The notes beneath the pieces were generated by a model that saw only the letters and a list, made by a program, of their open reading frames with translations, had not been told where the DNA came from and did no database searches. A program made the position numbers and the translations under genes. Shown here piece by piece: positions 3,527 to 42,699 of a stretch of DNA of 64,000 bases. Origin of the DNA: Ginglymostoma cirratum (taxonomy: Eukaryota); NCBI GenBank assembly GCA_024137785.1, contig JAHRHZ010000085.1, forward strand, positions 2,294,279 to 2,358,278, in the 5' to 3' direction. Every line of letters starts with the position of its first letter. The stretch's first letter is position 1.

Positions 3527-3655
3527 TTAGTAGCTGCTTTTCACCGCTGCACACACTGGACTTTTTCCTTGGTGTTTGGGTTTTGATGATGTACTGGAAT
3601 CATTGAATTTCAGAACAAGCGAAGTCGGCCTGCTATCTGTCATGCAGTATTTTGT
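3527..3655 (-). CDS. Copy A terminal cytoplasmic exon with degenerate ITIMs (TKYCMTDSRPTSLVLKFNDSSTSSKPKHQGKSPVCAAVKSSY*)
   Basis: gtttttcag| acceptor, phase 0, TAA at 3529-3527; colinear with the ITIM exon at 38563-38697. Confidence 0.72.
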   Translation of the reverse strand, partial: TKYCMTDSRPTSLVLKFNDSSTSSKPKHQGKSPVCAAVKSSY

Positions 3656-6495
3656 CTGAAAAACAACATTGAGGCTGAATTACCATTCATTTAAATCATT
3701 CTCGATGAAAACTGCACAAAGATGGTTAAATGCCATCTCAAAATCAACTCATTATAATGAGTGAACTTGTTGTATACTTATACAACCTTAAATATACCTC
3801 TATATATTTTGATTTCTTTCTGTTGTTTTGACATTATGCCATCCTCAGAACCAACTTGATCAAGAGCAGCATATTGCAGCTTATCCTCAGGCAACTCTCG
3901 TTTTCTCTGGAAAGCCAAGATTTAATGTCATTTGGTTATTTTATTTTGGAGTAAAAGTGTATGTTGTTAATATGAACAATCAGTTTGTTGTACTGAAAAC
4001 AACAAATGCTGGAGATGAAAGTGGGTCACATAACTCTCATGGAGAGAGAGAGCAAGCTAATATTTCCAGACTAGATGACTCTTCATCACAGCTGTGGTAG
4101 CTTGCTCTCTCTCCACGGATGCTGTCTAACCCCCTGCGATCTCCAGCATTTGTTGTTTCCATACAGATTCCAGCATCTGCAGTAATTTGTTGCGACAGAC
4201 TACTGTACTGACTTTGCGAACACTTCATTACAATCGTTACAATTGACAGTTTCTTCCTCTGAATTGTTCCTTGCCAGGAACATCACACCTAATCATAAGC
4301 AACAATTATTTTTCAATACTATTAATGTTAATATAATGTTAATTTAAAGTTTCCAGGGAAGAACACTGCTGAAATAGTTGCATCTGTCAGTCCAATTTAA
4401 TTAGGTTTTTGAATTCTGAGGGATGAATTCCTGTTTTATTACCTTCTGCAACAAACTGAGCATGCAATGAAATTCATTAAATAAAGCAAAAATAAATTTG
4501 TATTCATTTAATAATGACAGGTCCCACTGCTTCATTTTAAAATCATAACTGGCAACTATTTGAAATAAATTGGGAGTGTGCTTCTGAGGTGAGGTCACTC
4601 AACCTGAAACATTAACTCTGAATTCTCTCAACAGATGCTTCCAGACCTGTCGAGCTTTTCCAGCAATTTCTGTTTTTGTTAGTAACGTCTTTCATTTGAA
4701 GGATAAATAGTGCAGGATTTGATTAAAATTTCCCTGACATTAAATTGTTACTTTAGTCAGTCAGTTAGAGAGAAGGAACAACTGTATTTAACACTGCCAT
4801 TAGAAAATTAATTTTAGAATCACCCTGTTCCCTGATGAATAAAGGAAGGTAATTATTTCAATTGGCCATCGAAACAGTAATAAATAAAGGTGTTGAGGGT
4901 GAAGTGAAGACAAAGGTACAGAGCACTTTCAAAGGATTTGCAAGGCATGGGTGATGCCAGATAGCATGTTTAAAGTAAATTATTGATGTTGTAAGTCAGA
5001 AAATATGTCAACTATTTAGGGAGGAATATGGTCAGGTGAGTGACAATGTAAAAATGTGACTTTTGTCAAAAAAGTAAGCCACAATATTTCAGTGTTCTGA
5101 AATGGACTCTTTAGTCTTCTGTGAGGCATTTCTCAATCATAGATAATTTTGTTTTCTCTTTCCATCTGATCCATTGCTCATAAAACAATAAAACACAGGC
5201 TAAGCATTGCACCTGGACATCAGAGGACTTTATTCTGTTACCTACAACAATATCAGTTGCAACATTTCACAAAAAGACGCGCAGTGATGGAGTAAAGAGT
5301 TTGAAGTAATTTCTGAAGACCTCCAGGAAAGGAATTTAATTTTTGCTGCACGTGCAGTGAGTGGGTCTATTCTGCCTGAAGTACTATTTTTAATAGGATG
5401 TGACCCTCAGTGGCAAGGCCAGTATTTGATGCCAATAATCGTTTACTATGAAGAATCCAGCACAACACCAGCTTTCTTGACTGACTGCACTCCAACATTA
5501 TTGTCAGGGAGGAAGTTGCAGGCACCAAATGCAATGAAAGACGAGGGTACTTTTTGTGGTATTATACTCAAGGAAGGAGAATGATTTTTTAAAAAAAATC
5601 AAATTCAGATCCAAGACTGAAGCTGAGATAATAAAGCATTTCAATTGATAAAAAGGCTTTAACTGTTTGAAAATGTATTTAAAGAGAATAAATCTGCTGG
5701 CCTGCACTGCATTCAACCGTTGTCAAGCATAAATATGTGTAATAGCATTGTGTCCCCTGTAGTGGCCAACCAAAGACTTCACGTTTTACCAAACTGTTAT
5801 CAGTTATTCCTGGATAAATGCCACCTGCTCCTTTTCAGGTGCCACAGATAGGGATGTGTCTCTCATATGTCACTGATATTTACGTGTTGAAAATTAAAAA
5901 TGAGAGAGGTTTGCAGCACAACAGCTCATCTATTTGTTTTCCAAGATTGCATGATGCTGCAGCACGTTGCACTAGCAGAGAGACACCCGACAGTAAAAGC
6001 TTTCTCAGGAAGCCAACTTGTGCAAACTGTTGTTTGGCAGAAGTCAGACATAATCACCGAACTCAGACTAATGCTGAGTGAATTTTGAACAGTGTAGAAA
6101 AGAAGGAGGGAATAATCATCTTTATTTGCACCTGGAAACCTACCATTCAAAACAGTCATCAGCCCAATGTAATCAACATTGATTTTCATGTCTGTAACCA
6201 ATGTGGCAAAATTATTCAGCACACTGTCACTTATTAGTGCGAATGAAAACAAAAATCAAAGATATTTCACAATTATGTTTGATGATTTAAAACAGCTGCA
6301 ACAGTTCATGAAACTTCCTACCACTTTCGATTTTCTTTATTGTGTTTTCATTCAGCTGATGTTGTGTTTTTGAGAGCTGATGAAATGTTCAAGACTCACC
6401 TTGACGTGTTAGAAATATGTATTTGTGTTCCCAGCTTAAATTGTTCAATTAGACTTGAAAATTAAAATCAATAGAATGAAGGAAATTTGCCTCAC

Positions 6496-6542
6496 CTCAT
6501 CCTCATACTGAGTTCGATTTATTGATGTTTTCTTTCCCCCAT
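6496..6542 (-). CDS. Copy A cytoplasmic exon (DGGKKTSINRTQYEDE)
   Basis: ttttatttctcag| acceptor, GAG|gtgagg donor, 47 nt, phase 1-0; same-length homologue at 41664-41710. Confidence 0.75.
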
Positions 6543-6957
6543 CTGAGAAATAAAAGTGTTATAAGTCAGCAACACAAAAAAGGCTATTTGTACTTATCAG
6601 CAAACCAATGAAACCAAAAGCAATTCGACTGCTATTCAATATTTGTAAACAGGGTACAATAGGAAGAACTGTTTCGCAATACAGCTCTAAATGTCACACG
6701 CAGATGCTTTGAATTTATGTTTTCAGGATTGAAGCTACAGAAACTTCTGTCAGCAATGAATTTCATCAATACAATTTTGACCTGCACTGATACAGTTCAC
6801 AAAGCGAAACTTCAAATCTTTTTGTTTTATATTTGATGTGAAGCAGTGTCTATATTTGAAAGATGTTTCACATAAAATATTTGTTTAAATTGTCCAGTTC
6901 AGAAATTCAGCTCCCAATTATGTTAATTTCAGATAGACATTTCTATCCTGTTCATAC

Positions 6958-7071
6958 CTTTGGAGATAAAGAACAGAAAACCCTTGGCAATCATCACAGT
7001 CAATATCAGAATTGCAAGTGCACGAGCGGCACAACCGGCAGCCATAGTAACACTGATGTTAGAAGCAAAAT
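6958..7071 (-). CDS. Copy A exon 4: stalk/transmembrane (DFASNISVTMAAGCAARALAILILTVMIAKGFLFFISK), Arg-containing
   Basis: attacag| acceptor, G|gtatga donor, 114 nt, phase 1-1, open and hydrophobic; paralogues at 47268-47381 and 42147-42259. Confidence 0.85.
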
Positions 7072-7599
7072 CTGTAATATTAATATAAAATCAACATTAG
7101 GAATTGCAACAGAAACTGAAAATGCACAGGTTGAAATGTCATGTCTGTCATTTTCAATTGTACTGCCTTGTACATCTGATAAATATTGTTCATAAAGTCA
7201 CAGCATTTCAATTCTGTTGTCTCTTTGTTCAACTGATCCGTTTGCAGCCAAAAGCAAAATGTCTGGAACTTAGAGAAATAAGTAAATGACAAAAATACCT
7301 CAACGAATGACACATTTAAAATGAATGGGGAAATAGTGCTCATTGCAAAAAGCGTTCAGTTCTCTTAGCTATGTGGCACAATACTAAATTGTTTGGTGGG
7401 AGTTTAATTGAATTGTATACAGATTAATGTCAGAAAAAAGTATATAATGGAACCTGCTGTCAGATTTGCTTGAGTTTTCGGTGGAGGCAAACTTCAGTTG
7501 AAATAGTTTGAATCTCTCTGCAGCTACGACCCAATCAGCTATGACTCTGTGTTTAGTATTGAATCAAGTATGTGGCATTCTGATGAATTGGGGAAATAA

Positions 7600-8690
7600 A
7601 CTGGAGGTTGACAGCACGGAAACACGCCCTTCAGCCGTTCTTGTCCATGCCACCCAGTTTTCACAATTACTTGCGTCCCATTTGCCTACATTTGGTCCAT
7701 ATCCCTCAATACCCATTCCATCCATGTAACTGTCCAAATGTTTCTTAAATGACAAAATTGTACTCGCCTCCATCACGATCTCTGGCAGACTCTTCCTGAC
7801 ACTCACCACCCTCTGTGTGAAAAATTGCTCCTCTGGACTCTTTTGTATCTCTCTCCTCTTACTTTAATCCTGTTCCCTTTAGTCTTAGACTCCCCTACCA
7901 TCAGGAAAAGCTGTTGGCTATCTGCTCAACTCTGCCTCTCATGATTTTACAGACCTTTATAATGTCACCCTTCAGCCTGTATGCTCCAGGGAAAAATGTC
8001 CCAGCCATTCCAGCTTCTCCTTCTAACTCAATTTTCAAGTCCAGATAACACTCTGTGAAATCTTATCTGCGCTCCATCTCGTTTAATAATATCCTTTCTA
8101 TAGTAGAGCAACTAGAACTAGATGGTGAAATTTGAATTCAATAAAAACCTGTAATAGTGTTTGTCTTAAAAAGACTGATCTCCTTACTGTGGAAAAGATG
8201 TAGTTAAACTTGAAAGGGTTCAGAAAAGATTTACAAGGATGTTGCTATAGTTGGAGAGTTTGAGCAATTGGACGACTCTGAATAGTCTGTAACTGTTTTC
8301 GCTGGAGTGTCGGAGGCTGAGGGGTGACAGGTTTATAAAATATACAGGTTTATAAAATCATAGGCCATGGATAGGATGATTAATCAATTTTTTCCCCTGG
8401 GTAGGGGAGACCAAAACTAGAGGGCATAGGTGTAAGGTGACAGGCGTACAATTTAAAAGAGATCTGTGCATTGTTCTGTGTCTGCAATGAACTGCCAGAG
8501 GAAGTGGTCGAGGCTGGTCCAATTACAACATTTAAAAGGCATCTGAATGGAAGTATGAATAGGAAGGGGTTTGGAAGGACATGGACCAAATGTTGGTAAA
8601 TGGGACTAGATTAATTTAGGATATCTGGTAGGCATGGATGAGGTGGAATGATGGTCTGTTTCCGTGTTGTTCATCTCTATTACTCTCACA
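7600..8690. mobile_element. Two opposed CR1 3' fragments
   Basis: FKKHLDSYM-type C-terminal remnants on both strands; similar fragments at 13340-13810, 20780-21250, 35990-36480, 42790-43300, 44065-44315, 48010-48990, 55140-55665 and 62770-63240. Confidence 0.8.
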
Positions 8691-11462: not shown

Positions 11463-12880
11463 CTGTCCCTGTTCAAAAAAGGGAATAGGGATAACCGTGG
11501 AAATTCAGGCCAGTTAGTCTTACGTCAGTGGTGGACAAATTGTTGGAAAGGGCTCTAAGAGACAGAATTTATGATCACTTGGATAGGCGCAGTTTGATTC
11601 GTGGTAGTCAGCATGGATTTGTGAGGGGTAGAACATGCCTCACAAACCTTACTGAATTCTTTGAAGAGGTGAATAAACACGTGGATGAAGGTAGCACAGT
11701 GGACGTGGTACACATGGATTTAAGTAAGGCCCTTGAGTTCCCCATGGTAGGCTCATGCAGAAAGTTAGGAGGCATGGGGTAGGGGAAAATGTGGCAGAAT
11801 GGATTCAGAATTGGCTGACCCTTACAAAACAAAGCGTGGTAGTGGATGGAAAATATTCAACATGGTGCTCAGTTACGAGTGGTGTACCACAGGGATCTGT
11901 TCTGGGTCCTCTTCTGTTGGGATTTTTGCAAATTATTTCAATGAAGGATGGAACCGGTGGATTAGTAATTTTGCGGATGATACGAAGGTGTGTCCAGTTA
12001 TGGATAGTGCAGAGGGCTGTTTTAGGTTACAGAGGGACATTGATAGGATGCAGAGCTGGGCTGAGAAATGGCGCGTGGAGTTTAACCCTGAAAAGTGTGA
12101 AGTAATTCATTTTGGAAGGATAAATTTGAAAGCAGAATACAGGGTTAACAGAAAGATTCGTGATAGTGTGGAGGAGCAGAGGGATCTTGGGGTTCATGCC
12201 CACAGTTCCCTGAAAGCTGCCTCCCAGGTGGATAGATTTGTTAAGAATATGTCTGGTGGGTTAGCTTTCATTAATAGAGAGATTGAGTTCAAGAGCCGTG
12301 AAGCTATGCTCCAGCTATACAAAACTCTGGTTCAGCCACATCTGGAGTATTGTGTCCAGTTCTGGGCACCTCATTACAGGAAAGATGTGGAAGTGTTCGA
12401 AAAGGCGCAGAGGAGATTTACCAGGATGTTGCCTGGAATGGAGGGAAGGTCTTACGAGGAAAGGTTGAGAGAGCTAAGGCTTTTCTCTTGAGAACAACGA
12501 AGGATAAGAGGTGACTTGATAGAGGTATGCAAAATGATCAGAGGTATAGATAGAGTGGACAGCCAGAGAATTTTTTCCGAGGGCGGACGTAGCTATAACG
12601 AGGGGGCATAGTTTTAAAGTGAGTGGAGGGAGATATAGGGGAAACGTCAGAGGCAGGTTCTTTACTCAGAGAGTGGTCCGGGCGTGGAATGCATTGCCGG
12701 AGAGGACAGTGGAGTCGGCCTCATTTGGGGCATTTAAGCGGCTATTAGATCGGCGTGTGGATGATAGTATAAGGTAGCGGTGGAGGTTAGATAGACCTTA
12801 GGTTTAGGGTAAAAGTTCGGCACAACATCGGAAGCCGAAGTGCCTGAACTGTGTTGTGCTGTTCTCTGTTCTATGTTCTA
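11463..12880 (+). mobile_element. 5'-truncated CR1/HER1 LINE (RT fragment)
   Basis: QHGF..GRTCLTNL, GVPQGSVLGP, FADDTK motifs with frameshifts; (gttctat)-type 3' tail. Confidence 0.92.
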
Positions 12881-14345
12881 AAAAGGACACATCCGGAATA
12901 TTTTTTCAGCTTATTTTCTCCGAAGTGGACTACCCGGAAGAGTTGCTGTGTGTACTATGAAATGGTGGTAGAGCATGTGACAGTAGATTCAAAACTGTAT
13001 TGATACCGGGGATTTTGCCTCATTCATTGGACTTTCACCGTTGGGCTGGCGTTCGTGAGACGGGCACTGTGGAATCTCAGATAGAGTTCCAAGTGATGCC
13101 ATCGCCAGAGTCCCCGCCGAGTACGAAAGGCAGTATGAGAATCACTTCTTAACACGTATATATGCGGAGTTTAACCTCACCATTTAACTTTAATATGTAT
13201 CGAAATTTAAAATGTCAACTATTAATTCATATGTGTATGAAGTATGAACGAAATAAATTAGCTCTAATAATGAGCGCACCTGTCTTGTAATTATTTCAAT
13301 CTAACATTAAAACAATCTGTTAAATATTTTCGACCTAACGCAGAAAGAGTTAATTGCACTGGGGAGGGTGCAGAGGGGACTCGCCGGGATGCCGCCAGGT
13401 TTGGAACATTTTAGCTGTGATGTTTCTGGAGAAGCATGGATTGTTTTCTTTGGGGCAGGGAAGGTTGAGGGGAGCCTACGATTGAGCTGTATACGATTAT
13501 GAAGGCAGAGACAGGGTGGATGAACAGCAACTGCCCGCTTTAGTTTAAGGGTGAATAATGTGAGATCATAATCTGCAGAGGGAACGGTAAGTGGTCTACA
13601 GCGACTTGGAGGATGTATTTTTCGCGAAGTGGGTGTTGGGCATCAATAATGCGCTGCCTGGGAGCGTAGTGCAGGTAACAAATCTTTCAGTAATGTACGT
13701 GGACTACGTCATAACATTCAAGTCTCTGGGCCAAGTGCTGGAAAGCGTGATTCGTGTAAATATGAGGGCTGCATCCAAGGGACGAAAAGGCTTTTTCTGT
13801 GCTGTATATCCTGATGATAGTCCTCTCACAAACGGTAAGGACTGCAGATGCTGGAATATAGAATCAATAAATGTGGAGCTGGAAAAGCGCAGTAGGTCAG
13901 ACAGCAGCGCGGGAACAAGAATGTCATCACTTCGGCCGGAAACATTCACTTTCCTGCTCTTCGGCTGCTGTCTGACCTGCTGTGCATTTCCAGCTCCACA
14001 TTTATTGACTGATTTTCCTCTCTATCTATTTGTCAGTCTTTAATGTATCCAAAAAATAAATTTAATACTGTATGTATCTTCGGAAATGAATTGTAACTTT
14101 GCGTATTTAGTTAAAACTATGGGACATCTCAACGATGAATATTCACTTTTGGCAGTATCTCACCTGGCAATAAACTACACACGTTTGGAATAAGCAGAAG
14201 AAAGGAAACCTTTGACAAGACAATAGTGTCAAATTTCGGGATTGACGCAATCAGCGGGAAATGACTGTAATCATAATGTTTTACTTCGTCAACCTTTTTA
14301 AACGATGCCTGAACGATTAACGTACAATGTGTCATAGAATCTTAC

Positions 14346-14651
14346 CTTCTTTCGTAACAGTGTAGCTGGCATTTACTGGAAATGAGCTCGAAACGTGGTA
14401 TACTTGACACACGTAGACTATGTCACTTTCGGGCATATTTGGCACGTCCAAGGAGCTGACCACTTCATAAAGTCCCTCGCCTTTTAACTGTTTTACGTTT
14501 CTAAATCCAGTGAGGATTTGTGTACCGTTTCTGCGCCAAGTCAGGTTGAAGTCTTCCGGATAAAAGCCAGATGTCCTGCATTGCAGCTCGAAAGAAACAG
14601 ACGCAGGGTCTTTTAAGGGTATCAACACAATGTTTAGGGGAGCTGGTGAAG
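14346..14651 (-). CDS. Copy A exon 3: Ig C1-set domain
   Basis: aatgcag| acceptor, G|gtaag donor, 306 nt, phase 1-1; LQCRTSGFYP...LTW...YVCQVYH C1 signature. Confidence 0.93.
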
Positions 14652-15331
14652 CTGCATTGTAAATAAAATTCACATAAATGTAGACATTGGACTTCTACTC
14701 CAAAACTGAAATGATTTAATGAACGAACCAACTGTTACTTCTGGGTATGGCGGCTGCATTGATCGTCATTATTTATGCGAGTAGGGGTTGCTGTTACTTT
14801 TATCATGTAGTGACCTCCAAAGGCAATTGATACATCAATTTATACTATCTTGTGTCTCTGTTAATTACTAAATATGTTTGAGTTTTCATACTGCACAGTC
14901 CTCGCAATCAGCGGTTGGGGAACAGAATCATTGAAAATGAAACGGCCGCAGTCCAAGCGAAGGGAAAGGGAAAATGGCTTTTCAAATTTGAAAATAAAAT
15001 GACATTTAAAGTGCTTAATATTGCCGATAACTTCTAGAAAATACATTCTGTTACGCCGTGCTTAAATTGTAATAAGTGCTTCACTTGGAAATCTTGCATT
15101 AGCTTTCAATGTAACACAAATTTAAGTACCATTCGCTGACACAGTGCAATTTCTGAACTGTGCAGTGTCGCTGGTGATGCTTTTTTTTAAAACGGCATTA
15201 TTGAACGTGTCATTCGGAAGAAGTGAACAATCTTATATTCACTGCATGCATTTAAGAACATGTAACTGCTAACTTGCATTTACTGTTCATTGGAACCAAG
15301 TTGACTGAACGTTTACTTTGGTAGCACTAAC

Positions 15332-15643
15332 CGTATACTACAAGTTGCGTAACTTGTTTCTCAGAAACCTTTCCATGCTGATTTTCGAATCTACAGTAAT
15401 ATGTTCCCGCGTCCAGGACAGTCACATTGAAGAGTTTGAGGTCGGCTCTATGTTTCATTACCGTGAAGAGTTTTCTGCTGTCTCCCTTCAGAAGCATCTT
15501 ATTACCTTCTCTCCACCAGAAAACACTTATCTTTGAAGGGTTGGGCTCGAAGGGGAAAAAGCATCGCAGGATAGCTGTTGTATTTATCAGGGTTTTTATT
15601 TGCATAATATCCGGAGTAACATCGTCCGAAGTGCAGACAGCAA
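15332..15643 (-). CDS. Copy A exon 2: Ig V-set domain
   Basis: ttaacag| acceptor, G|gttagt donor, 312 nt, phase 1-1; LRC...VFWWRE...DAGTYYC...TQLVV motifs (B-strand Cys, C-strand Trp, DxGxYxC). Confidence 0.93.
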
Positions 15644-15935
15644 CTGTTAACAAAAGCCATATATACAATGATTAAGCAGGGAAGATGAACTACAACATAA
15701 AATGAAATAATTAATCTAAGACAGTAGCTCTTTGATTTCTCCGTCACTCCCTGAATTTCTGCCCTAACTGAACTATTGCAAATATTTTTTCACTTATTCA
15801 GAGGATTCTTAAAACAAAGAACTCTGACGTTAAAAGCCTATGAGAAAAAGTGTCCGATTATCCATCAAGTATCAGTTCAATTATTCTTCCACGTCAATCA
15901 AGGACATTCCAAACACTGCAGGGAAGAGCACGTAC

Positions 15936-15990
15936 CTGGGTACGAAATGCACAGAAAACAGAAGTTCCACAGTGATCCATTCACAAACAT
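15936..15990 (-). CDS. Copy A exon 1: leader/signal peptide (MFVNGSLWNFCFLCISYP)
   Basis: ATG at 15990; 55-nt exon ending CCAG|gtacgt (phase 1); hydrophobic; paralogous exon at 60475-60529 (+). Confidence 0.85.
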
Positions 15991-16109
15991 AGCGACAACG
16001 AAACCCTGGCAGAAAATACATTGGATGTAAAAAGAGGACTGATGAAAGTTTGTTGGAACATCAGTTATGCATTAATTTTAACCACTTGCTTCTATCTGAA
16101 GGCAAGAAG

Positions 16110-16126
16110 CACGTGACTAATTCCTC
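16110..16126 (-). promoter_or_regulatory. Candidate proximal promoter motif: GAGGAA (ETS/NFAT core) - TTAGTCA (AP-1-like) - CACGTG (E-box)
   Basis: ~120 bp upstream of the copy A ATG; identical at 60339-60355 (copy D); decayed in copy B near 49056-49072. Confidence 0.35.
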
Positions 16127-16440
16127 GCGGAGTGCACAACATGCATGTGTTTTCATATAAGATCTTGTTGTGTTAACAGTGAGTGGAAATGATGACACGG
16201 ATAAACAACTGCAGTTATAGCAAAATCCAGACCCAGATGGTGAAACGACTGTCAGAGTTCGTATCCACTTACATGATCCACCAGGCTTGGGTGCAATATC
16301 GGCTGAACCAATACAAAATTCCATCTTTTTTTTACCTGTGTCCACATAACAATAATATCCTTTCTTTAAGAACATTTTTCTCAGAATTTCAATTCAACCA
16401 CAATATGCAACTGAGGCCCTTTCAAAGAAAACACATGTTT

Positions 16441-16740
16441 CGGTGGCACGGTGGCTCAATGGTTGGCACTGCTGCCTCCCGGTGCCAGGGATCCGTGTTT
16501 GAGAAAGTGACTGTTTGAAGTTTGCACATTCTTCCCGTGTCTGAATGGGTTTTTGCCGTTTCCTCCCGCAGTCCAAAGATGTGCAGGTTCGGTGGGTTGG
16601 TCATTGTCCGCAGTGTTCAGGGATATGCAGGTAAAGGTAATATAGCCGCGGGAATGCGGGGTTGCCGTGTGGAGGGGTAACGTGGCTAGGGTGGATGCTC
16701 TTCGGAGAGTCAATGCACAAGATCACAGGGATTCTATGAT
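16441..16740 (+). mobile_element. HE1-type tRNA-derived SINE
   Basis: ggtggcacggtggctca..tggtt.gcactgctgcctc head, tttgcacattct and ccaaagatgtgcaggtt core, gggattctatgatt tail; further copies at ~18960-19110, 19860-20172, 29355-29693, 32880-33380, 37285-37590, 50455-50760, 56306-56615 and 59715-60020. Confidence 0.85.
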
Positions 16741-18139
16741 TCAAAGGCATTTGGAATTTAATTCTGCTTTGAATGATACCAGGACTTATTAAATAACTAA
16801 CGTAAATCGTGCTTCCACGTAATGAGTATTTGCCCTGGCTGTTGGATCAATGACTTAATTGCATAAAAACGCAAAGTGGTTATTTCCTGCGGTGGAAGTG
16901 CTTTCGGCTTGTGATTTTAAATAAACCTGTTGGCCTATAACCTGGTGTCATGTGTCTTTGAATTTATTTCTTTCAGGTAGCTGTTGGTCGAATTAAATGA
17001 AGTTTCTGTCACGCCGGCGAGTGAATGAGGTGGATATGCTGAATTTTGCTGATGTTTCGGGCAGCCGTGGTGCAAATTTTCCACTTTCCCCGGCGAAGAC
17101 ACCCACTGACATTCACGAAAACGCTGCACTGAATATTTCACTCAGAAATCGATCAAATCCATGGAACGCATGTAAAGTTGTTGATCAGTGATTGCTTCAG
17201 TCTGCTCCTGCTCTTTAGTTACGAAGCGCATTTGGACATTAATTGATAGGTGTTCAATTAAAATGTCATTAGCAATTAAATAATAATGAATAACATATTG
17301 TTTATTCTCTGTTTTGGGAAATTCCTGACAATTAATGTCAGAGACAGTGTTTCTTTCTTGAAGCTTTAAGACAATGACTGTCTTGTCTGTCAGTTTCACT
17401 GCTTTATCCTGATGCCGTCCTTCTCAGTTCTGTGGGAGCTGTAACCATTCAGACAAGTAGAGAGATTTCAGCAAACTCCTGAATTCTACTTTTCAGAGTG
17501 AAGTAATGCATTTCCAGGCAACGATATGGATCAATACACAACGATCCCCTGCCCTGCTTCTGAAACCCTCCTGTATTCCCTCCCCAACTGCTCACTGGGT
17601 TTATCTGCGCCACGTTGACGACAGCGGATTAAGAAGGCAGCCCGAGACGGCTTTCTCGGAAGCATTTCGGTGTTTCCAATAAATACTGTGCCATGCCAAC
17701 CAAGTCTACATTCCGCGAAAGCATAACAATAAATATTGTATTGTCAGTTTGATTTCAACAGCCAACCCCATAATGATGTCTGGAAAGATCATAAAGAACC
17801 TGATAGAACACAGATAAAAGTTTCACGGTCTATTAATGCGTTGGTTTTGAATGACAGTAGAAGATGTGAATTTAATTGGCTGGAATGAGCTAAGGTTCTA
17901 ATTTTGGGGCAGGACATCAAACAAGGAGCTGCACATACCGGGGATCTGAAGCAAAAAAATAGATATTGCCGGAGAAATGCATTGCAGAGAAAACAGAGTT
18001 AACGTTTCGAGTCCAGTGACCCTGCTTTCTGCGTTTGTTTGGGACAGGACGTAGCTGACACTTATTCACATTGTTAGATTGGTGTTCGTCTGCAGCTGAA
18101 CAGAAAAAACAATGGTTGAGCATATGTGTGTAGTCCTGA

Positions 18140-18836
18140 TGAGATGCTATCAAGATAACATCCCATTGATTTCTATATTCTCTATAGTTTAATGCTCTTT
18201 ATCTGCTTACACAGAAGTATGCAGGCATTGCCTTAAAACATCCTGCCCGACTAGAATTAGGTATAAACTTTGTAAATCTTTATCTTCCTGCACAGGGGTA
18301 TGTGGAAACTGTCTCAAATCAGATTAGGTGGGAAGCGTTTGTAAAGACTTCCGAAATCCTGTAAAGTATGTAACTTCTGTTTCTGCTAAAGGGGCCAGGC
18401 CACTGACTTTTGTCCAAACTAGACACTTCGGCGGCTTGAAATTACATTCTGTCACTTCAGCAACTTGAAATCGCCTCCTGTCGTTAGCAGTCACTTCGCG
18501 AAGGATCAATACTGTATTCTGCTCTCTTTATGTTTTCGATGTGGTAATTGTTTTTGCGTCATGTCATTGTCCGATGTAGTGATTGTTTCATGTAACATGC
18601 CATTGTGAGATGTAAAATTGCTTTACGTATTGTGCACTGGATCAGGTATAAAAAGCGGGGACTGTCCGCTGCTCGGGGAGAATCGCTTATGAGACTTTGC
18701 ATTCTGTGCCGGGTTGAGTAGCGTGATCCTCCACAGCTTGTACTTGCTTTGTAATAAAGGATTTGTGCTTTTCTAAACAGGTCAGTGTCTTGTTCTTACA
18801 TCAAGTCCGTGAGGGTCTCCGAAAACGAACCTAACA
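18140..18836 (+). mobile_element. Solo LTR (Gypsy- or ERV-type)
   Basis: TG...CA ends, CTGA 4-bp TSD, TATAAAA near 18647 and AATAAA near 18753; absent at the paralogous site (~57500). Confidence 0.85.
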
Positions 18837-25239: not shown

Positions 25240-26730
25240 CTCCACCTGCCTACGTCTCACCTCTCTCTCTCTCTCTATCTCTGGACTCCTAGTCCTTTCA
25301 GTCTTCCTTACCCTGTCTCCTTCCTATATCCTCTCTGCTACCCCCACACTTTGTCACTGCCATTTTTTGTCCCACTGTCCCTTCTGCATTACTCTTTCTT
25401 GCCTTCTCTCTCTCCCTTTTTCCAACTGTCTCTCCCCACCTGTCACTGTTTCTTGCCCAATCTGCGTTATTGTTAGCACTTTTCCTCTTGCTCCCTCCCT
25501 CTCTACTGCTGTCGTACCTCACTATTTCCATCTATACCAAATATACACTCAATCTATCACCAATATTCCTCTCCCCATCTATTGCCCCTTCCCCACCTCC
25601 CTCAGCATCTCTCTCACCTGAACTACCCCACTTCCTTTATCCTCTGCCATTCCATCTGTCTCTATCTTACACTCATCCTGTCATTCCGATTCTCTTCTTC
25701 TCTCGGCCACCTCACTCATTCTCTCTTCCCCTGACCCTACCCAATACCCGTACCCTCTATCTCACACTCTCTCTCCTCACCTCCCCATCCTCTCTGCCTC
25801 AAGTCCCCATGCACTGTCACCCACATCCTTGCTCAATTACTCCTCCTTCTTTTCTCAGCCAGTTCTTCCTCCTCCTCCATCTCTCTTATTGTCTTTCCCT
25901 CACTGTATTCCTCCCTTCCTCCTTGTAATCTTCCTGTTGCCCTCTCTGTCTTCCTATTCACTCCCACACCCTCTCTCTGTCACTCTCACGCATCTCTGTA
26001 TTGCTTCAGCACTCCCTCCCAGTCCCCGCTAATCCTCACGTCCTCTCTATTCCCCTTATCCGCTCCATCTCCTCAGCTCTCTCTACCTCCCTGTCACACT
26101 CCCTAAGCTGCACTCTCACCCTCTTTTCATTACCCCCTCACTCTGTCCCTCTATCACGCCTTCACCTCTCACCAATCTCTGTTCCTACTGATGTCTTCCT
26201 TTTTATCTTTCTCTCCCTTCTCTTAGAGTTCTTATTTCTTTCTGTCTTTCACCATCTATCCTTCCCTTTCTCCTACTCCCCCCTCCCTTGACCCATCCAT
26301 CATTCTTACCCCTTGCTGTCTTCTACTCTTACTGCTGTCCCTCCCTCTGACTCCTTCTCCATTACCTTCTATCCCTTCCCTCAAATTTCCCACTGCTCCA
26401 CCACTCTTTCTCGTTCAAAAACTACCCCGATCCTATTCCTATCTCTCTGCACCATTTCCAAATTTCATTATCTCCCTTTCCCTTTCTATCTCTACCCTTT
26501 CCTCATTGTTCATTCCTACTTCATATTTCGCTGCCTCATCTACCACACTCCCTCCCTGACCCCACTCCTCTCGCTATCACTTGGTCTCTAGAAACATCTG
26601 CGTTGACCTGTCTTGCTCCATGCCAAATATTTCTCTCACTTTGTCAACCTCATCACCTTGCTCACCTTGAACTCTCCCTCTCCCATCCTCCAATTCCCAC
26701 ATACATGTATATTGTCCCTCTCAAAGTCTC
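25240..26730. repeat. Long polypyrimidine (CT-rich) low-complexity tract
   Basis: ~1.5 kb almost free of G on the + strand; inverted copy (GA-rich) at ~50200-52010. Confidence 0.9.
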
Positions 26731-26789
26731 ACATGTTATCTCCTCACAATTTTATGAAAGGAGATTTCATGAGTTTTTTTTACATAATG

Positions 26790-28570
26790 AAAAAGCAAGA
26801 GAATGGCAAGCGGATGGACTCCTGGGGAATGAGTGTGGAGAATTAGTATTGGGCAGCAAGAAATGGGGGAGAAACTGATTAGGTACGTTACCTCTTTCTT
26901 CACAGTGGAAGACACCAGCGGCAAACCAGTACTTCAAGAGAGTGAAGCGGAAAAGATAAGTGTAATGGAGATCAATAAGGCAAAATTACTGAGGAAGCTG
27001 AAAACTCTGAAGTTGGATACATAATGTAGACTAGATGGACTAAACCCGCGTTCTGAAGGAAATAGCTGAGGAGATTGTAGAGGCATTGGAAATGATCCTT
27101 CAGGAATCACTGGAGCAGGGAGGATCCCAGAGGACTGGAAAATAGCTAGTGGAAGACCCTTGTTTAAGAAGGGAGGGAGGCAGAAGATTGGAAACTATAA
27201 GCCAGTTAGCCTGGCCTTGGTTGTTGGTAAGTTTTTACAGCCCATTATTAAGTATGAGATTGTGGTGTACTTGGGCGTGGCTGGTAAATTAGGGCTGAGT
27301 CAGCACGGCTTCATCAAGGGGAGTTCATGCCTGACAGATCTTTCAGAATTCTTCATGGAGATAACAATCAATTGAGACAAAGAAGAGCCAGTGGACCTGA
27401 TTTATTTGAGTTTCCAGAAGGCATTTGACAAGGTACTGCACAGGATGCTACTAAATAAGAGCCCATGGTGTGAGGGGAAAGATACTGGCATGAATAGCAG
27501 ATCAGCTGACTGGCAGAAGGCAGAGAGTGGGGACAAAGCAGCCTTTTCCAGAATGGTAGCTCGTGACTAGTGGACCTCTGCAGTGGTTAGTGTTTGGATC
27601 ACTACTATTCATGCTTTCATTAACTGTCTGGGAAAAGGAACTGAAGGAATTGTTGGTATATTTGCAGAAAGCACAAAGATAGGATGGAAGGACGGACACT
27701 GTTGAGGAAGAGCAAGGCTGCAGGAGGACTTGAACGTGCTAGGCGAGTGGGCAAAGAAGTGGCAGATGGAGTACAATGTGGGAATGTGTGAGGTTATGCA
27801 GTTTGTGGGAAGAATGGAGGCACAGCCTGTTTTCTAAATGGTGAAATGCTTCAGAAACCTGAAGCACGAAGAGACTTGGGAGTACTGGGTCAGGACTCTC
27901 TTAAGGTTAACATGCAGGTTCAGTTGGTGGTTAGGGAGTCAACTGCACTGTTTGGATTCATTTCAAGATTGGTAGAATACATGAGCAGAGACTGTACGCG
28001 GTTTGGTCAGACTACAGTTGGAATACTGTTAGCAGTTTTGGGCCCTGTATGCAAGGAAGGATATGCTGGCATTGGAGTGATTCCACAGGAGGTGTACAAG
28101 AATGATCCTGGGTATGAAGGGCCTGTCGTAAGTGGAGCAGTTAAGGATGCTGAGTCTATATTCAGTGGAATTTAGAAGGATGAAGGGGATCTCATTGAAC
28201 TTTACAGAATACTGAGACGTCTAGATAGAATGGATGTGGAGAAGCGGTCTCCACTTGTAGGAGAGGCTAGGACCCGAGGCCACAGCCTAGATTGAAGGAA
28301 TGACTCTTTAGAAATGAGATGGGGAGGAATTTCTTCATCAGAGTGCACTTAATCTGTGGAACTCATTGCTGCAGACTGTTGCGGAAGCAAAGTTATACAG
28401 TGCTTTTAACCATTCGATAGATAGGTTCTTAATTGGTAATGGGATCAAGGGTTACAAGAATAAGGCAGGAGATTTGGGTCCAGAAATAGATCAGCTGTAA
28501 TTGAGTGGCAGAGCAGATTCAGTGGGTCAAATGGTCTAATTCTGCCTCTGTATCGATTGGTCCAGCGGTC
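26790..28570 (+). mobile_element. Degraded CR1 LINE
   Basis: FKKGGRQKIGNYKPVSL and QHGFIKG motifs; many stops. Confidence 0.88.
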
Positions 28571-35700: not shown

Positions 35701-38700
35701 GAGCTGTGATAACATCTTCCTGGAGCTAACATACACCTGAACTTCTCAGAACTTATGCTAAGTCAGATCTTTTAGTTATCCTATCACTTCTGTTTCTTTA
35801 ATGAACACAAACTCTGAACTTCAAGGCAATCTAGTTCACTATATATGTCACATTACATCCATCCTTTTCCAAGAGCTTCACAGGACTTCACTACTCAAAG
35901 GTTCTCTCTCAGTAATGTTACATTTACCTCAATCTAAAACAAAATAACTTCCAATCCTCTCTAACGAACATTTGATAACCCATCGTTCATTTTTGGAATT
36001 GTGCATTCAATTTACAAGGATTTTGCCAGGGTTGGAGGTTTTGAACTACAGCAAGACCTGAATAGGCAGGCGCTATTTTTCCTGGAACATCAGAGGCTGA
36101 GGGGCAATTATAGAGGTATATAAATCGTGAGTGGTGTAGATAGAGTGAATAGCCAATGCCTTTTTCCCAGGATAGGTGATTTCTCAACTAGAAAGCATAG
36201 GTTTAAGGTAAGAGGGGAAAGATTTAAAAGGGATTTAAGGGGTAAATTTTTCACACAGAGGATGGTGCTTGTATGGAATAGCCGTCACAGGAAGTGTTGG
36301 AACCTGGAACAATTACAACATTGAAAAAGCGCCTGGATGGGTACATGAATAGGAAAGGCTTGGAGATATATGGGTCAAATGCTGACAAATGGGATCAGAT
36401 TAATTTAGGATATCTGGTTGGCATGGACAAGTTGGATTGAAGGGTCTATTTCTGTGTTGTACAGCTGTGTGACTCTATTGCTCTATTACTAATGTTGTTA
36501 GTTTGCAAGGAATTTTTGACAAAAAAAATCCATGAGTGCACAGAACCCATTCATCCTACAACTATGTCGTGTAATCTGTTTTTTTAAAGCATATGTCATG
36601 GTGGAAACATCTCCCAAGTTAATTATTAACTTCAAATACAGAACTTAAAAATAGCCAGTTTGTAACACAAAATCAGAAGCTTAAGCTCGCACTCAACATT
36701 ATGTATATTTAAATCCTACAGGGAAGTGTAGGACTGAATCAGGAATAACTTGAGTGGAAAAATATACCTGCTTTACTTATCATAATAATGTAAACCTTGA
36801 TATTTAGTTTTTACTGCAGTAAAACAATCAGCACAACACTCCTGAAATTTTGACTGACACAAATATGAAAACAGAGTAGCTGCAGTACTGCAGAAATGCA
36901 AAGGAAAATGAGGATTATAGACATTAAATGGTCTTGACTTGTCAAGATGTTTGTTTCTGAGATGCTGCAAGCATCTTTGTAGGGAGGTGTTTTGTTGAAA
37001 AGTGTTGGTCGTCATTAGAGGTGGGTTATCAAGGTTGAAACATTAGGAGAACATTGGAATGAAGGAGCACTACTATTTGTTACATGCACTTTAAAAGTCA
37101 TGTTTGAGTCAAAAATATTGCCAATTAACGAAGTCAAGGAGGCATTGGCAGTATGGTCATGTTGATGGTGCAGTACATCATTGAACCACAACAATGTTCT
37201 GAGATCATGGGGTAAGATTCCATGATGGCAGAAGGGGAAAATTGGATTCAATTTACAAATCCAGAATTGAAAATTAGTCTAATTTCATAGAATCGCTACA
37301 GCGTGAAAACAGGCCCATCAGCCCAACAAGTCCACACCAACCTTCAAAGCATCCCACCTAGATCCACCCACTGTAACTCACTGAATCTACTCATTCCCTG
37401 TACACTATGAGCAATTTACCATGGCCAATCCACTTAGCCTGCACATCTTTGGATTGTGAGAGGAAACTGGAGCACCTGGCGGAAACCCACGCAGACACAG
37501 GGAGAAAATGTCAACTCCACACAGACAATTGCCTGAGGGTGGAATCGAACCCAGGTCCCTGGTGCTGTGAGCCACCGTGCTGCCCATTATGTTGGTGGGA
37601 GAACTATAGGGGATTGAGTCAGGTTGGGAAATTGGAGTTGATGTGGGTCATGATCAGCTTCTCGAAGCATTCCATGATTATTGAAGTCAGAGCTATTGGA
37701 CAAACATCATTAAGGCACACTGCATGTGTTTGTGATCATGTTTCATAATTGTGATCATGTAACACTCGTGAATTTTGTAAAAACATTTTGGGATTATTAA
37801 CGCGCATTACAGAAGGAAATGTACCGATCCTTATTAGCTCTGACCTGAATGTGACTCAAGAACCAATGTCATGTGGTTGACTCTTAATGGCTCCCTAAAC
37901 ATTCCTCACAAGCTAACATGCAAGTAGGAGTGGGAAATAATTGGAGCCAATTATCACTTGGGCCTATTTAGCTTCACAAAAGAAAAAAAAAGGCATTGAT
38001 ACTTCTGCAGAACAAGCATGACATAGACAGCACTGATAAAATCAGAATTGTTGCTTGAATGATAATAGCTCGAACAAAAAAGTCAAATCAAAAAATATAA
38101 TAAAACATCAACAAATTAAAAAGATTAAAACAATGAACAACTGATACATAAGTTTGACACAGTAAAAACCATCCTACGCTGAAAGAAAAGACAAAAGGAA
38201 ATGAAAATATCAGTATTTTCATGATGTAACTAGCAGTGAAATGGTGAGAAAAATATGCCAGTTTAGGAGCTCTTAGAAAGCTATTCAAAAACAACAATAT
38301 TTACTTCTTAGGTGAAACATAACAGAGAGTTCTAGAGATTTATGAGTTTAGTAGTTTGAATGAAGCCAGTTGCTATCTCAAATTGTGCATGTTAAACAAG
38401 TTTGAAGGCAAAATAGATTTAGTTCATGAGACATTAAAAGAAGACAAGAAGTGAATGACTGCTTTTTGAAAGCGATGAAAGACCACAAAGAGGACTGCAC
38501 CAGACAGAAATGGATACGAAACACCCATAATACCAATATCTCTTCATTTTGACTGTGCATTTTTAAATTTGGCTGCTGGCTTTCACTGCTGCATACGATG
38601 GAGTTGCAGTTTTGTGTTCTGGTTTCAAGGTGAACTTGGGACCATTCAATTTCAGAGCAGCATACGTCACCTGGCTTTTTCTCATTCTGTCTTTGGTCTG

Positions 38701-39139
38701 TAAAATTACATTGAAAGTAATTCATTTTTGCTTTGAATTTCATCAAAAGCTAAGAACTTTTCACTGTTGTTCAGAAACCAAATGATTATAACTAAGAAAA
38801 TAATTACTGTATTCAAACATATGACCAGAAAAGTACCTCTGCATGTACTGTTCTTTCATCCTGGAGCTTAGGAATATTAGCATCCTGTGAGTGGACCAGT
38901 TTAAGATCAGCATACGTTAATCTGTCTTCAGATGTCTCTTTTTGCCTCTGGTAAGTTAAAGCTTAAAATCCATGAATTTATGTTTTCTGGAGTCAAGAAT
39001 CAACATTGCATAGTAATCAATAACAATTATTTTGTCTCATTGAGTTTGCTAGCATTCTGTTACATTCTTAATAGTTGAAATCCTCTGTATCCAATCTCCA
39101 TCACTTCACTGGACAAAAATGAAAGCTGCCTCATTGTCT

Positions 39140-39326: not shown

Positions 39327-39364
<38 letters not shown>

Positions 39365-39915
39365 CACACACACATGCACGAACACACGTATATAAATGCA
39401 CACACACATGTGAATCTATGGGGTGAATTTGTATTTGCAGATCCATTTTATTTCGGTCAAAAAGCACACAATTTATAGGCAGTCAGTCAATGTGTGGCAT
39501 TTTATAAATTATTACTTTAGAGATAAAGCCAGTCTGACTCCAAACCAAAACACAATTCTAAGCAAGGCCTCACATCTAACATGCATTGTCTGATATTAAA
39601 TGTCATCTTTGCTTTGCACGAATAAATCCTTTAGTTGTCTCAGAACAGTGACTTGAAAGGAATTTAGGGATTCACATGGGGATATTAATCAATTAAAACC
39701 TTCTAACTGATTGAAGATTTAACAGCACCTCAGGTTTGTTTAATATATCCTGATTAGTAGTGTTTTACTAATTTTTTAATGTTTTACATATAAATTCTCT
39801 GCCTGATACTGCCTCTCTCACTAACACTTGAAGAAGGACTGAGGCTCTGAAAGCTTGTGTTTTCAAATAAACGTGTTGCACTACAACCTGGTTGTCTTGT
39901 GATTTTTGACCTTGA
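39140..39915. mobile_element. Non-autonomous Penelope-like element with inverted ends and internal (CA)n
   Basis: caccaggttatagtccaa...ttgcactacaacctgg inverted ends; same family as the flanks of 21630-23955. Confidence 0.7.
39313..39410. repeat. (CA)n microsatellite
   Basis: Direct inspection. Confidence 0.95.
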
Positions 39916-42699
39916 CAAAAATCTGGTGATACCTTGCTCGCAAGCTATGAAAATTTAAGTTTGAGTATGTTGAAGCTTAGAAGATGAACTCTGCAGAATT
40001 CAGTTTCCAGAGCATAAAATGATTGTATTAATTCAACATTATCAATTTTCAACATTCATACAGAAATCATTCAACATTACATCCTGTTACAAGTTAAAGA
40101 TACTATGAATGTTTTGCTCTTAAATTTTGATGCAACTGATCTGAATTTCCTTTACAAATATAAATAAAGTTACTTAAACATATGACTGTTCAATTGGAAA
40201 TAAAAGTACAATTCAAACCGTGCGCAATAGATAAACATCTATGCTATTATTGGTTGTCTGGTGCATTAATTGGTTTCAAAATGGCATCTATTGTATTTTT
40301 GGCTTAATGTTTAAATTAATAAGATAATTATACTGATAGAAGCAATCATTTATTGGTAAGTTGAATAGCAATGAAATAATTAGATCTCTTTAATTATGTC
40401 AATAGCACAGTTTGCATGATAATGAAGCTTTTTTAGTGAAAATGATCATGCAATCCAATTCCGTTGAATCTTTAAAGTACACAAAATACCATACAGTATT
40501 GCCCTGAAAATTGTTAATTTCTACCTGAAGTTTTTTTGTTAGGATATATACATGTGGCAACAGATTAATTGGGAACCTGGTCATGTACAGAACAATGAAA
40601 TAATTGAATAGTTAACCAATGTTGTTCCTTCCATGCAAAGAACCAAACACAAAGTGTCAATTTTGTTTTACACACGTACTCTCAGACATTTTATGCAATA
40701 TTGTTTTAATATGGGCAATTATTCATTTTCTTGATATCTGCACCTCTGCACCTGAGTCATTGAAATATGGAGTCACAACCTGACAAGACCAGGGGAAATG
40801 AAGGGAGGCATTAGCAAAGCTGAGGAACATGTTAAATAACACAATTTCAAGGGCAGCTACTCAATGCATGTAACACTGACAATAAGCTAAATGATTCAAA
40901 ACAAATAAACATAATAAATGAATGGCTTTCGTCCAATTGACATGAAAACACATCACTGCAGGGTGATCAGGAGAACTGATTATTCAATGATATTTAGGAT
41001 GGGCAAAGGAAAAGAGGATATATTTGTATTACATTAATAGTAATGGATGGGATTTGTATCTTAGGATCACAGATCAGAATAAAAAAAAGAGGAATCTTCC
41101 ATGGTGGACCTAAGAAAGAGCAAGCAGGAGGAAACATTGGCAGTTGCTTATAAGCCACAAACACCAGTAATAATGGGAAGCATAGACAAAACAAAAAGAT
41201 CGGTTAAGTGTTGTACATAGTTTTTGCAACAATCATGTCTGGATTCAATCAAAACATAGGTTTGACGAAGAAATGAGCACTGTAGTTGTGAAGGATGAGT
41301 TTCAGAGTGTGTTAGGGATAGTTTTCTGGAGCAGTTATGTTTAGGAACAGACTACAGAACTATGTCTATCTTGCAACGTGCGACAAATAATAATTAACAA
41401 TATTGTTGCAAAAGAATCTTGAAACATGAATAACTGTACAATGATGGATTTAGCCATGACAAGTATGATAGTTGTTAATGTTTGTAATACTTTCAATCAT
41501 TTCTTTCTGTATGTTACTTTCATGGTCAAGGCTAAGTTGCACTTTTGTCATGACAATAAAACTGTTTGACTTCATCCAGATAGATTAAAACAGATTACTT
41601 TGATTGCAGTGACTGAATCATTCAGATAAGTTTCAAAGCAAAGTTGATGGCGAAAGGCCTTACCTCATCTATGGGTTGAGTAGGATTTCTTGCTTTTTCC
41701 TTTGAACCAGGTGGCAATAAATTTGGCATTATTTGTCAAGACAAGCATGATGTTTGCATTCATCAGTAAGATGGCAAAATACACTGCGATTCACATCAAC
41801 ACAAGGTAGAATAAGCTAACTGGATTCAGGATGTAACTCAAAATGTTGAACTCAAGTACAATTATTTAGTTTGTGTTGAAGCTTTCAAAATATTACTTCA
41901 TCAGTGAAATTCACTGGACTACCTTCAGATCTGAAAAGATAGGAATTAGCAGACTAAAGCTGTGACCCTGAACATGTCATGCTGGTGTTGAAGTGACACA
42001 AATGCGTGCAAGCAGTTTCATGTCATATATTTATTTTAACTGGACAAGTCAGATTTCAGTACCCAATAATGTGAATGCACCACTGTTTGCTTAATCAATA
42101 CTTGTGTGGAAGTTATTTCATTTCACATGTATATTCCTATTCATACCTTTAGATATAATGAATAGAAGACACTTCACAACCATACTGTGCATAATAGAAT
42201 TGCAAATGCTCCAGTGGCATATCCAGCAACAACAGCAACACTGATTTTAGAGGCAAAATCTATGAGATGAACATAAAATTAAAATTAGAAATTGTATCGG
42301 AAACCAGAGACTTATAAATTTAAATATCACATGCTTCTTTTCCCATTAAACTGCCTTGGTAATATTCTACTACGATACATGAAATCTCACATGTCAATTT
42401 CTTCCCTCAGCTTTCCTTTATGCAGTTGGATACAAAGAGGGAAAATTATAAGAATTTGGAGAAATAAAAGCAGATGAAACAATAAAGATAATTAATATAT
42501 CCAAATTCAGCAGTATTCAATTAATGTGTTCAAATCAGATTCCAGTGAAAATGGGAGAATGTTCTCTGAGATTCATTTCTGAGCACAAATAAGTTGACAC
42601 ATTTTCAAAGAAAATCTTTCTCCATGTGCAGCCAATCTAACTGTTGAGTGAAGACAATTGCATATTCATAGTTCACTGGACTAACAATAGAGAACTCCA

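Follow-up and report, generated by a model that had tools for sequence, protein, structure and literature searches.

The DNA analysed here is a stretch of 64 kb from Ginglymostoma cirratum (contig JAHRHZ010000085.1), called the window in the following. It is part of a SIRP-like receptor cluster of cartilaginous fish, whose unit is composed of a leader, a V domain, a single C1 domain, a transmembrane (TM) exon and three cytoplasmic exons. I read the gene studied here, gene A, as an intact and transcribed gene that is spliced in its 3′ part, has an Arg in its TM segment, keeps a single immunoreceptor tyrosine-based inhibitory motif (ITIM) and is a mosaic of two lineages. According to the same reading, which I consider probable, fragment C is the decayed 3′ end of an inhibitory gene, pseudogene B is a decayed V-C1 copy, a cassette at 47 kb is an orphan, and the Arg of gene A would pair with a signalling adaptor. 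An initial annotation had proposed that the window is a locus of paired activating and inhibitory receptors. This is true of the family, which has neutral-TM members with ITIMs and Arg-TM members with short tails. It is true of the window only in part, since A and C are not a live pair: C is dead and A keeps one ITIM. The locus is a known kind of system, present in a form that is annotated only automatically.

Exon structure and transcripts of gene A

Gene A has seven exons on the minus strand (15990-3527), all of which are open and have canonical phases and splice sites. They are listed here in the order of transcription, the cytoplasmic exons being named cyt0, cyt1 and cyt2. P0018 and P0023 are two related Heterodontus proteins.

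15936..15990, minus strand: leader exon; ATG at 15990; MFVNGSLWNFCFLCISYP; donor CCAG/gtacgt, phase 1; located by tblastn to the P0018 and P0023 leaders
15332..15643, minus strand: V exon, 312 nt, phase 1-1; Pfam ig/V-set/I-set; splice sites
14346..14651, minus strand: C1 exon, 306 nt, phase 1-1; both cysteines kept; Pfam C1-set 2.6e-10
6958..7071, minus strand: TM exon, 114 nt, phase 1-1; Arg codon CGT at 7024-7022
6496..6542, minus strand: cyt0, 47 nt, phase 1 to 0; GGKKTSINRTQYEDE; tblastn to P0018 and P0023, RNA joints
3798..3906, minus strand: cyt1, 109 nt, phase 0 to 1; ITIM LQYAAL at 3879-3862
3527..3655, minus strand: cyt2, the last exon; with cyt1 it reads DKILHDR and stops at TAG 3635-3633; without cyt1 it reads ..PTSLVL..PVCAAVKSSY and stops at 3529-3527

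Both Ig domains retain their cysteines. The V domain scores alike with the Pfam ig, I-set and V-set models, and its J-like motif is degenerate (KQVTQLVVY); most members of the family have a J-like GxGTxLxV motif, and the family consensus for this strand is GTGxxLxVY (alignment A3). The exons cyt0 and cyt1, which sit between the TM exon and the last exon, had been overlooked in the initial annotation. An intermediate exon was expected from the phases, which are 1 at the end of the TM exon and 0 at the start of the LQYAAL exon (3906-3798). The missing exon and the leader were located by tblastn with the short post-TM segment and the leaders of relatives, which came from an HMMER search with the C1 exon. 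The gene models of the relatives have the same exon order as gene A, the small cyt0 included.

The peptides on which the initial annotation was built are present in the window. The TM peptide of copy A (..AAGCAARALAILIL..) lies at 7071-6958 and its tail (..RPTSLVL..SPVCAAV) at 3655-3527, while the corresponding peptides of copy C (..VAGYATGAFAILL.. and ..VTYAAL..SYAAV) lie at 42259-42147 and 38697-38563, all on the minus strand. The TM codons are CGT (Arg) in A and GGA (Gly) in C, and the two tail tyrosine codons of C are replaced in A as described (TAT>TCG and TAT>TGT, that is, Y>S and Y>C). With tblastn E values of 5.5e-8 (TM exon) and 2.5e-7 (tail) in a search space of 64 kb, the homology of A and C is above chance. 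Their alignment, which had been said to hold almost residue for residue, is collinear and ungapped, but the amino-acid identity is only 43-52%.

What had been overlooked changes the reading of the tail. The cyt1 of gene A is 2 nt shorter than the 111-nt cyt1 of fragment C, and the frame of the last exon is shifted. As cyt1 ends in phase 1 owing to this shortening, the last exon reads DKILHDR followed by the stop codon, not the frame assumed before. Moreover, gene A keeps LQYAAL in cyt1, and thus not all inhibitory tyrosines have been lost. The tail past the TM exon is about 59 residues in length in either form of gene A. The ITIM-free tail that had been assigned to copy A is correct insofar as both last-exon tyrosines are replaced and their frame is the one read when cyt1 is skipped. 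In contrast, the main transcript keeps LQYAAL and reads the last exon in the other frame. The distal ITIMs of gene A were lost first by frameshift and not by the Y>S and Y>C replacements.

The predicted exon chain was compared with RNA. Public run X1, made from the same organism in 2013, was used in the form of assembled contigs, which were compared with positions 3400-7200. The contigs give the GT..AG joints 6958/6542, 6496/3906 (depth 12.4) and 3798/3655 (depth 12.4), and in addition a joint that skips cyt1, 6496/3655, at depth 6.1. An X1 contig matches 6958-7060, the Arg codon included, without mismatch. The whole 109-nt cyt1 (3798-3906) is matched without mismatch or gap, and a contig spans the last-exon region from 3400 to 3657. 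The introns of gene A are uncovered in X1 except for repeats at about 3.9-4.8 kb. The 3′ exon chain of gene A is transcribed as predicted. Since cyt0 ends in phase 0, the cyt1-skipping form reads the last exon as ..PTSLVL..PVCAAVKSSY up to its stop codon and has no ITIM.

Two side observations were made on the same contigs. At position 3607, the A of the window is replaced by G in an X1 contig (depth 11.4), which in the cyt1-skipping frame changes Phe to Leu (KFN>KLN); the difference is probably an allele. A repeat at 4162-4796 in the intron between cyt0 and cyt1 is covered very deeply in RNA-type runs, up to about 2650 in X1, and shows many loose ends. This repeat is interspersed and abundantly transcribed, and is not a part of the gene.

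Fragment C, the mosaic origin of gene A and their kin

The initial annotation had taken paralogue C as a working inhibitory partner of A. This does not hold. The TM exon of C has an in-frame TGA, the acceptor of its cyt0 is TG, and no V or C1 exon was found within the window 5′ of C on its strand. The 1-nt deletion in the TM exon was scored against the other two TM copies of the window (alignment A1, column 96).

42147..42259, minus strand: TM pseudo-exon of C, 113 nt; Gly at the Arg position; 1-nt deletion leading to an in-frame TGA at 42176-42174
41664..41707, minus strand: cyt0 remnant of C, 44 nt; acceptor TG instead of AG; donor GAG/gtaagg retained
38837..38947, minus strand: cyt1 of C, 111 nt, phase 0-0; LTYADL and TVHAE
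38563..38697, minus strand: cyt2 of C; VTYAAL ... SYAAV; stop codon 38565-38563

From which lineages do A and C descend? The C1 tree joins A and B to the Stegostoma protein P0159 (support 100/99), and the sister clade consists of P0158, P0162, P0008 and P0160. P0159 has a neutral TM segment and four tyrosine motifs. The V domain of gene A is also closest to P0159, with 58% identity. In contrast, the TM segment of gene A is 86% identical to that of P0162 versus 54% to that of P0159, and its cyt1 and cyt2 are 69-71% and 70% identical to those of P0162 and P0158 versus 46% and 34% to those of P0159. The TM, cyt1 and cyt2 segments of fragment C are 79, 65 and 75% identical to P0159. To judge from the tree and these identities, gene A is a P0159-type ectodomain joined to a P0162-type Arg-TM segment and tail. 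The exons of C are the decayed 3′ end of a P0159-type inhibitory gene. C thus retains the ancestral inhibitory 3′ end that goes with the ectodomain lineage of A, and A acquired its Arg-TM and tail cassette from the other lineage. Since the 3′ cassettes of A and C come from different lineages, the Arg/Gly contrast between them did not arise by direct substitution; the neutral cassette to set against that of A is of the P0158 type.

Is this gene family found in other cartilaginous fish? HMMER searches with the C1 exon and word-index searches revealed V-C1-TM relatives in sharks, rays and a chimaera. Their automatic names are diverse: 'tyrosine-protein phosphatase non-receptor type substrate 1-like' (SIRP alpha-like), 'signal-regulatory protein beta-1-like', 'tapasin-related protein-like', 'NCR3LG1-like' and 'uncharacterized'. 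The suggestion that the family may be undescribed has to be given up, since the NCBI genome pipelines already call members SIRP alpha-like or SIRP beta-1-like. A literature search, whose coverage leaves out most subscription journals, turned up no paper on the family in cartilaginous fish. None of the match lists of the family search contains a protein encoded by the window, and gene A seems to be absent from the public protein sets.

Pairs of live genes whose ectodomains are nearly identical while their signalling parts are opposite were found in relatives and not in the window. Stegostoma P0158 has a neutral TM segment (..AGCAAGAF..) and the four tyrosine motifs LTYAAL/TVYAET/LTYLAL/PVYAAV. 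Stegostoma P0162, whose V region is identical to that of P0158, has an Arg (..ASCVARAI..), keeps LTYAAL and then reads ..TIYR-DKTKHDR.., with a frameshifted ending as in gene A; it is automatically named SIRP beta-1-like. The two Heterodontus proteins are 87% identical, P0018 having AGCAGGAL and an ITIM tail and P0023 having AGCARGAL and a 14-residue tail. A second TM type (..LIYRS.., ..WIVRG..) combines Arg with a short tail.

The co-variation of Arg with ITIM loss, which the initial annotation had described for A and C, is found across the family. All ten Arg-TM proteins (10/10) have at most one ITIM-like motif, and 12/15 of the proteins without Arg in the TM segment have at least two, though these are not independent events (alignment A3). 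The position of the Arg differs between Heterodontus (AGCARGAL) and orectolobiform sharks (AGCAARAL), and in the C1 tree a neutral sister stands next to each of these two forms. The Arg appears to have arisen three or four times, twice in the same TM type at neighbouring positions. The proposal that an activating member arose from an ITIM-bearing ancestor is sustained at the level of the family, where the Arg forms derive from ITIM-bearing ancestors. It fails for the contrast between A and C, whose cassettes are of different lineages.

Among the closest known systems is the SIRP family (SIRP alpha, beta and gamma; also SHPS-1, PTPNS1). C1 through TM to all four tyrosine motifs of the Callorhinchus (chimaera) protein P0093 is collinear with rodent SIRP alpha (E 8e-13), and the alignment of P0158 with SIRP alpha d1-d2 spans the V-C1 junction (E 9e-12). 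In word-limited searches, SIRP alpha of rodent and turtle gave the only matches outside cartilaginous fish, which is a lead and not proof. The nearest ESM Atlas clusters are also SIRP alpha (0.95). As in SIRPs, an N-terminal V domain is followed by C1-set architecture and a single TM segment, and in the inhibitory members, xTYAxL alternates with xV/EYAxT/I/L tyrosine motifs. Both families also include pairs whose ectodomains are nearly identical, with a basic residue in the TM segment. The inhibitory members of the family have the SIRP alpha-type four-tyrosine tail, of which gene A has only the first motif in frame.

There are also differences. SIRPs are V-C1-C1, whereas the family has one C1: a single C1 exon lies between V and TM, and the homologous proteins run from C1 straight into the TM segment. 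The family tail repeats up to eight motifs, unlike that of SIRPs. SIRP beta-type receptors have a Lys in the TM segment and a tail of few residues, and associate with DAP12. In contrast, the basic residue of the family is Arg, and the tails of its Arg members are still 14 to about 70 residues long and, in A and P0162, include one ITIM. On these sequence comparisons, the family would best be called SIRP-like rather than SIRP.

Structure comparison was less selective. In the AlphaFold model of P0162, the ectodomain is confident and residues 231-264 form a helix. A fold search with this model gave B7-H6 and ICOS-L at Z 14.4, SIRP gamma at Z 14.1 and PD-L1 at a TM score of 0.74, and PD-L2, butyrophilins and single C1 domains were tied too. 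Since the scores are tied among B7-H6, ICOS-L, SIRP gamma, PD-L2 and butyrophilins, the fold does not settle membership. B7 and butyrophilin proteins are the best rigid two-domain fold matches, and some ray members are automatically named 'NCR3LG1-like'. However, the Pfam C1-set model (2.6e-10) scores over the butyrophilin Ig-C model (1.7e-5), most members have the J-like motif named above, the family has no B30.2 domain, and the motifs of its tail agree with those of SIRP alpha. When the V and C1 exons were compared with PDB sequences, antibody constant domains and titin/contactin I-set domains were the best matches, which is of no help for family assignment.

UrIg and UrIg2 were considered as another candidate. 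They are non-rearranging shark VJ-C1 genes, and UrIg2 has multiple C domains, nine in nurse shark (PMC12227049). They resemble the family in having germline V and C1-set domains in elasmobranchs, and UrIg2 was among the C1 sequence matches (E 5.9e-12). They were ruled out: UrIg2 has several C domains, and no ITIM or paired logic is described for it (PMC12227049), as opposed to the single C1, the TM segment and the ITIM tail found here.

Proposed signalling of gene A and alternatives

The proposal for gene A is made by analogy with known receptors. In the membrane, its Arg would pair with an acidic residue of an adaptor that carries an immunoreceptor tyrosine-based activation motif (FcR-gamma or CD3-zeta type, or DAP12). 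This would make gene A an activating or dual receptor of KIR2DL4/NKp44 design. The phosphorylated LQYAAL could recruit SHP-1/2 phosphatases, and skipping of cyt1 would take that ITIM brake away. KIR2DL4 and macaque KIR3DS have an Arg in the TM segment and use the FCER1G adaptor, and NKp44 has a Lys in the TM segment and a cytoplasmic ITIM. Gene A shares with KIR2DL4, macaque KIR3DS and NKp44 the basic TM residue and the single retained ITIM. The macaque activating KIR offers a second likeness: a KIR3D ectodomain is joined to the KIR2DL4 Arg-TM segment and tail, and the receptor uses FCER1G (PMC8102735). One lineage's ectodomain joined to another's Arg-TM segment and tail is what gene A looks like. 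The ectodomains are unrelated, however, those of KIR being of C2/I type and encoded in the mammalian leukocyte receptor complex, so that the likeness is one of design only. A literature search on shark adaptors with an immunoreceptor tyrosine-based activation motif gave nothing relevant.

Several points weigh against the reading of gene A as an intact mosaic Arg-TM gene beside decayed relatives. A single small run, labelled only 'RNA?', provides the RNA support, and each joint is spanned by one contig. The splicing check that the initial annotation had called for bears out the joints TM>cyt0>cyt1>cyt2 and a minor cyt1 skip in X1, but the two raw-read RNA runs of 2026 (X7 and X8) have zero reads on the exons of gene A and reads only on the repeats at 3.9-4.8 kb. 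The C1>TM junction rests on phase compatibility and on the models of homologues, the RNA comparison covering the 3′ exons. The old frame of the last exon of gene A is open for 42 codons, for which the chance probability is about 0.11 (about 1 in 9), weak evidence when taken alone. The lesions of C and the inversion are read from the assembly sequence. The depth of the Arg is ambiguous by hydropathy: the hydrophobic stretch is about 31-34 residues in length, and 21-residue windows starting from 231 to 242 score alike. Furthermore, an X1 contig runs through the TM donor into the intron as far as 6885 (6885-6957, minus strand) and then continues with sequence that the window lacks. According to the translation of the window, such an intron-retained form would end in ..FISKGMNRIEMSI and a stop codon (GMNRIEMSI, stop), which would be a third and very short tail.

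The kept ITIM may also mean that A is simply a short inhibitory receptor. In its full form, this alternative holds that gene A is an inhibitory or modulatory receptor whose Arg lies at the outer interface or is tolerated, with no adaptor, and whose single ITIM signals. The in-frame LQYAAL of A and LTYAAL of Stegostoma P0162 speak for it, and hydropathy permits a TM register with the Arg at the edge. In contrast, a Lys-Gly after the helix, conserved in distant members, marks the cytoplasmic edge and by homology puts the Arg about 12 residues inside the membrane. The alternative also sits badly with the family, whose Arg-TM members have lost most or all ITIMs and in which the Arg was gained twice independently in this TM type. 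I consider it unlikely. A further alternative is that gene A is transcribed while heading to decay, its Arg and truncated tail not being under selection. Its neighbours B, C and the 47-kb cassette are indeed all decayed, its V domain lacks an intact J-like motif, and its expression is low, with none in two RNA runs. Yet the seven open exons, the canonical splice sites and the cysteines in both Ig domains speak against decay, as does the annotation of the same Arg and frameshift design as a protein in Stegostoma. I would give this alternative little credence.

The least probable alternative, which is already largely refuted, is the simple pair: a purely activating, ITIM-free A and a live inhibitory paralogue C in the same locus. 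It draws on the Arg and Gly of the two TM segments, on the Y>S and Y>C replacements in the last exon and on the ITIM-free tail of the cyt1-skipping transcript. However, C has a premature TGA, a lost cyt0 acceptor and no V-C1 in cis, the better-supported transcript of A keeps LQYAAL, and the 3′ cassettes of the two are of different lineages. Going beyond the intact mosaic gene that I prefer, a more speculative and rather doubtful possibility is that gene A serves as its own pair. An Arg-TM receptor would change between forms with and without an inhibitory motif, depending on whether the 109-nt ITIM exon is included or skipped, and the frameshift design common to gene A and Stegostoma would suggest upkeep. 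The same speculation would take SIRP-type paired signalling, with repeated gains of Arg and cassette shuffling, back to the base of jawed vertebrates, and the V-C1 form may precede the V-C1-C1 SIRPs.

Paired activating and inhibitory receptors are a recurring response to pathogen pressure. To my knowledge, those of cartilaginous fish have been little described beyond single families. The locus reveals no new kind of system, paired Ig receptors being well known. Rather, it shows in one place the making and the loss of pairs: cassette shuffling, a frameshift that silenced distal ITIMs, later decay of tyrosines and the death of the inhibitory partner. It also offers a transcribed Arg-TM gene that is testable with shark adaptors. 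In addition, the locus suggests that the tail motif array of SIRP alpha is older than the split of cartilaginous and bony vertebrates. It is known that activating receptors arise recurrently from inhibitory ones (PMC2213150), and the design of gene A agrees with this.

Pseudogene B, the orphan cassette and other elements of the window

Pseudogene B (60475-62241, plus strand) is the sole other V-C1 pair in the window. It is inverted relative to A and decayed. No TM exon was found on the plus strand of the window. A third TM exon with an Arg (47381-47268), which had been overlooked in the initial annotation, lies on the minus strand and is followed by a cyt0.

60475..60529, plus strand: leader exon of pseudogene B, from sequence comparison
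60835..61223, plus strand: V exon of pseudogene B, 389 nt versus 312 in A; insertions of 3, 4 and about 70 nt; frameshifted, with stops
61936..62241, plus strand: C1 exon of pseudogene B, open; both canonical cysteines replaced (C>G, C>R)
47268..47381, minus strand: orphan third TM exon with Arg; ..AASCVTRAFVILIL..; splice sites intact; 73% amino-acid identity to A
46803..46850, minus strand: orphan cyt0, 48 nt, 1 nt longer than in A; reads GGGKNKINQSNSA with stop TGA at 46812-46810; short-tail ending
49397..63492, strand not assigned: inverted duplicate of 13101-27544 (V-C1 of A and upstream), about 75-82% identity; homology continues to the window end; self-blastn

The orphan cassette (47268-47381 and 46803-46850) is a ready-made activating-type short-tail unit of Arg-TM and cyt0 without V-C1. 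The C-terminus of the whale shark (Rhincodon) protein P0008 (WGKKKINKSNST) is in the same frame as the orphan cyt0, yet P0008 has Gly in its TM segment.

Two duplications are visible by self-blastn. The inverted one sets A and B head to head. The direct one (44317-48574 versus 4815-8171 of A) contains the orphan TM exon. A 400-bp piece from just upstream of the leader is found in three copies, at 16051-16458, at 48995-49395 (direct) and at 60002-60414 (inverted). The copy at 49 kb adjoins the orphan TM cassette, an arrangement that would be left if leader, V and C1 had been deleted from a duplicate of gene A.

No additional exon of the family reached E 0.01 or better when the window was searched with all family proteins. 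At its left edge (2-46, plus strand), the window holds the end of another C1 exon (SSSFPENVSYTIVKE), and a further family gene must lie leftward. An Rfam scan of the window gave no match, and a tandem-repeat scan gave one simple AC-rich array and nothing else.

Decayed reverse-transcriptase fragments of a retrotransposon lacking long terminal repeats (non-LTR) lie at 11528-12873 and 45196-45954, both on the plus strand and with 74% mutual identity; there are weak RVT_1 matches at 11.5-12.5 kb. One of them is in the C1-TM intron of A and the other in the duplicated TM region. An assembly gap of 100 N (57566-57665) lies inside the inverted duplicate, and the homology to the A side is collinear across it. 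CT-rich low-complexity tracts at 24800-26900 and 50200-52400 have GC skews of -0.39 and +0.49 and contain many long spurious open reading frames rich in Ser, Leu and Pro. The two tracts are mirror copies inside the inverted duplication.

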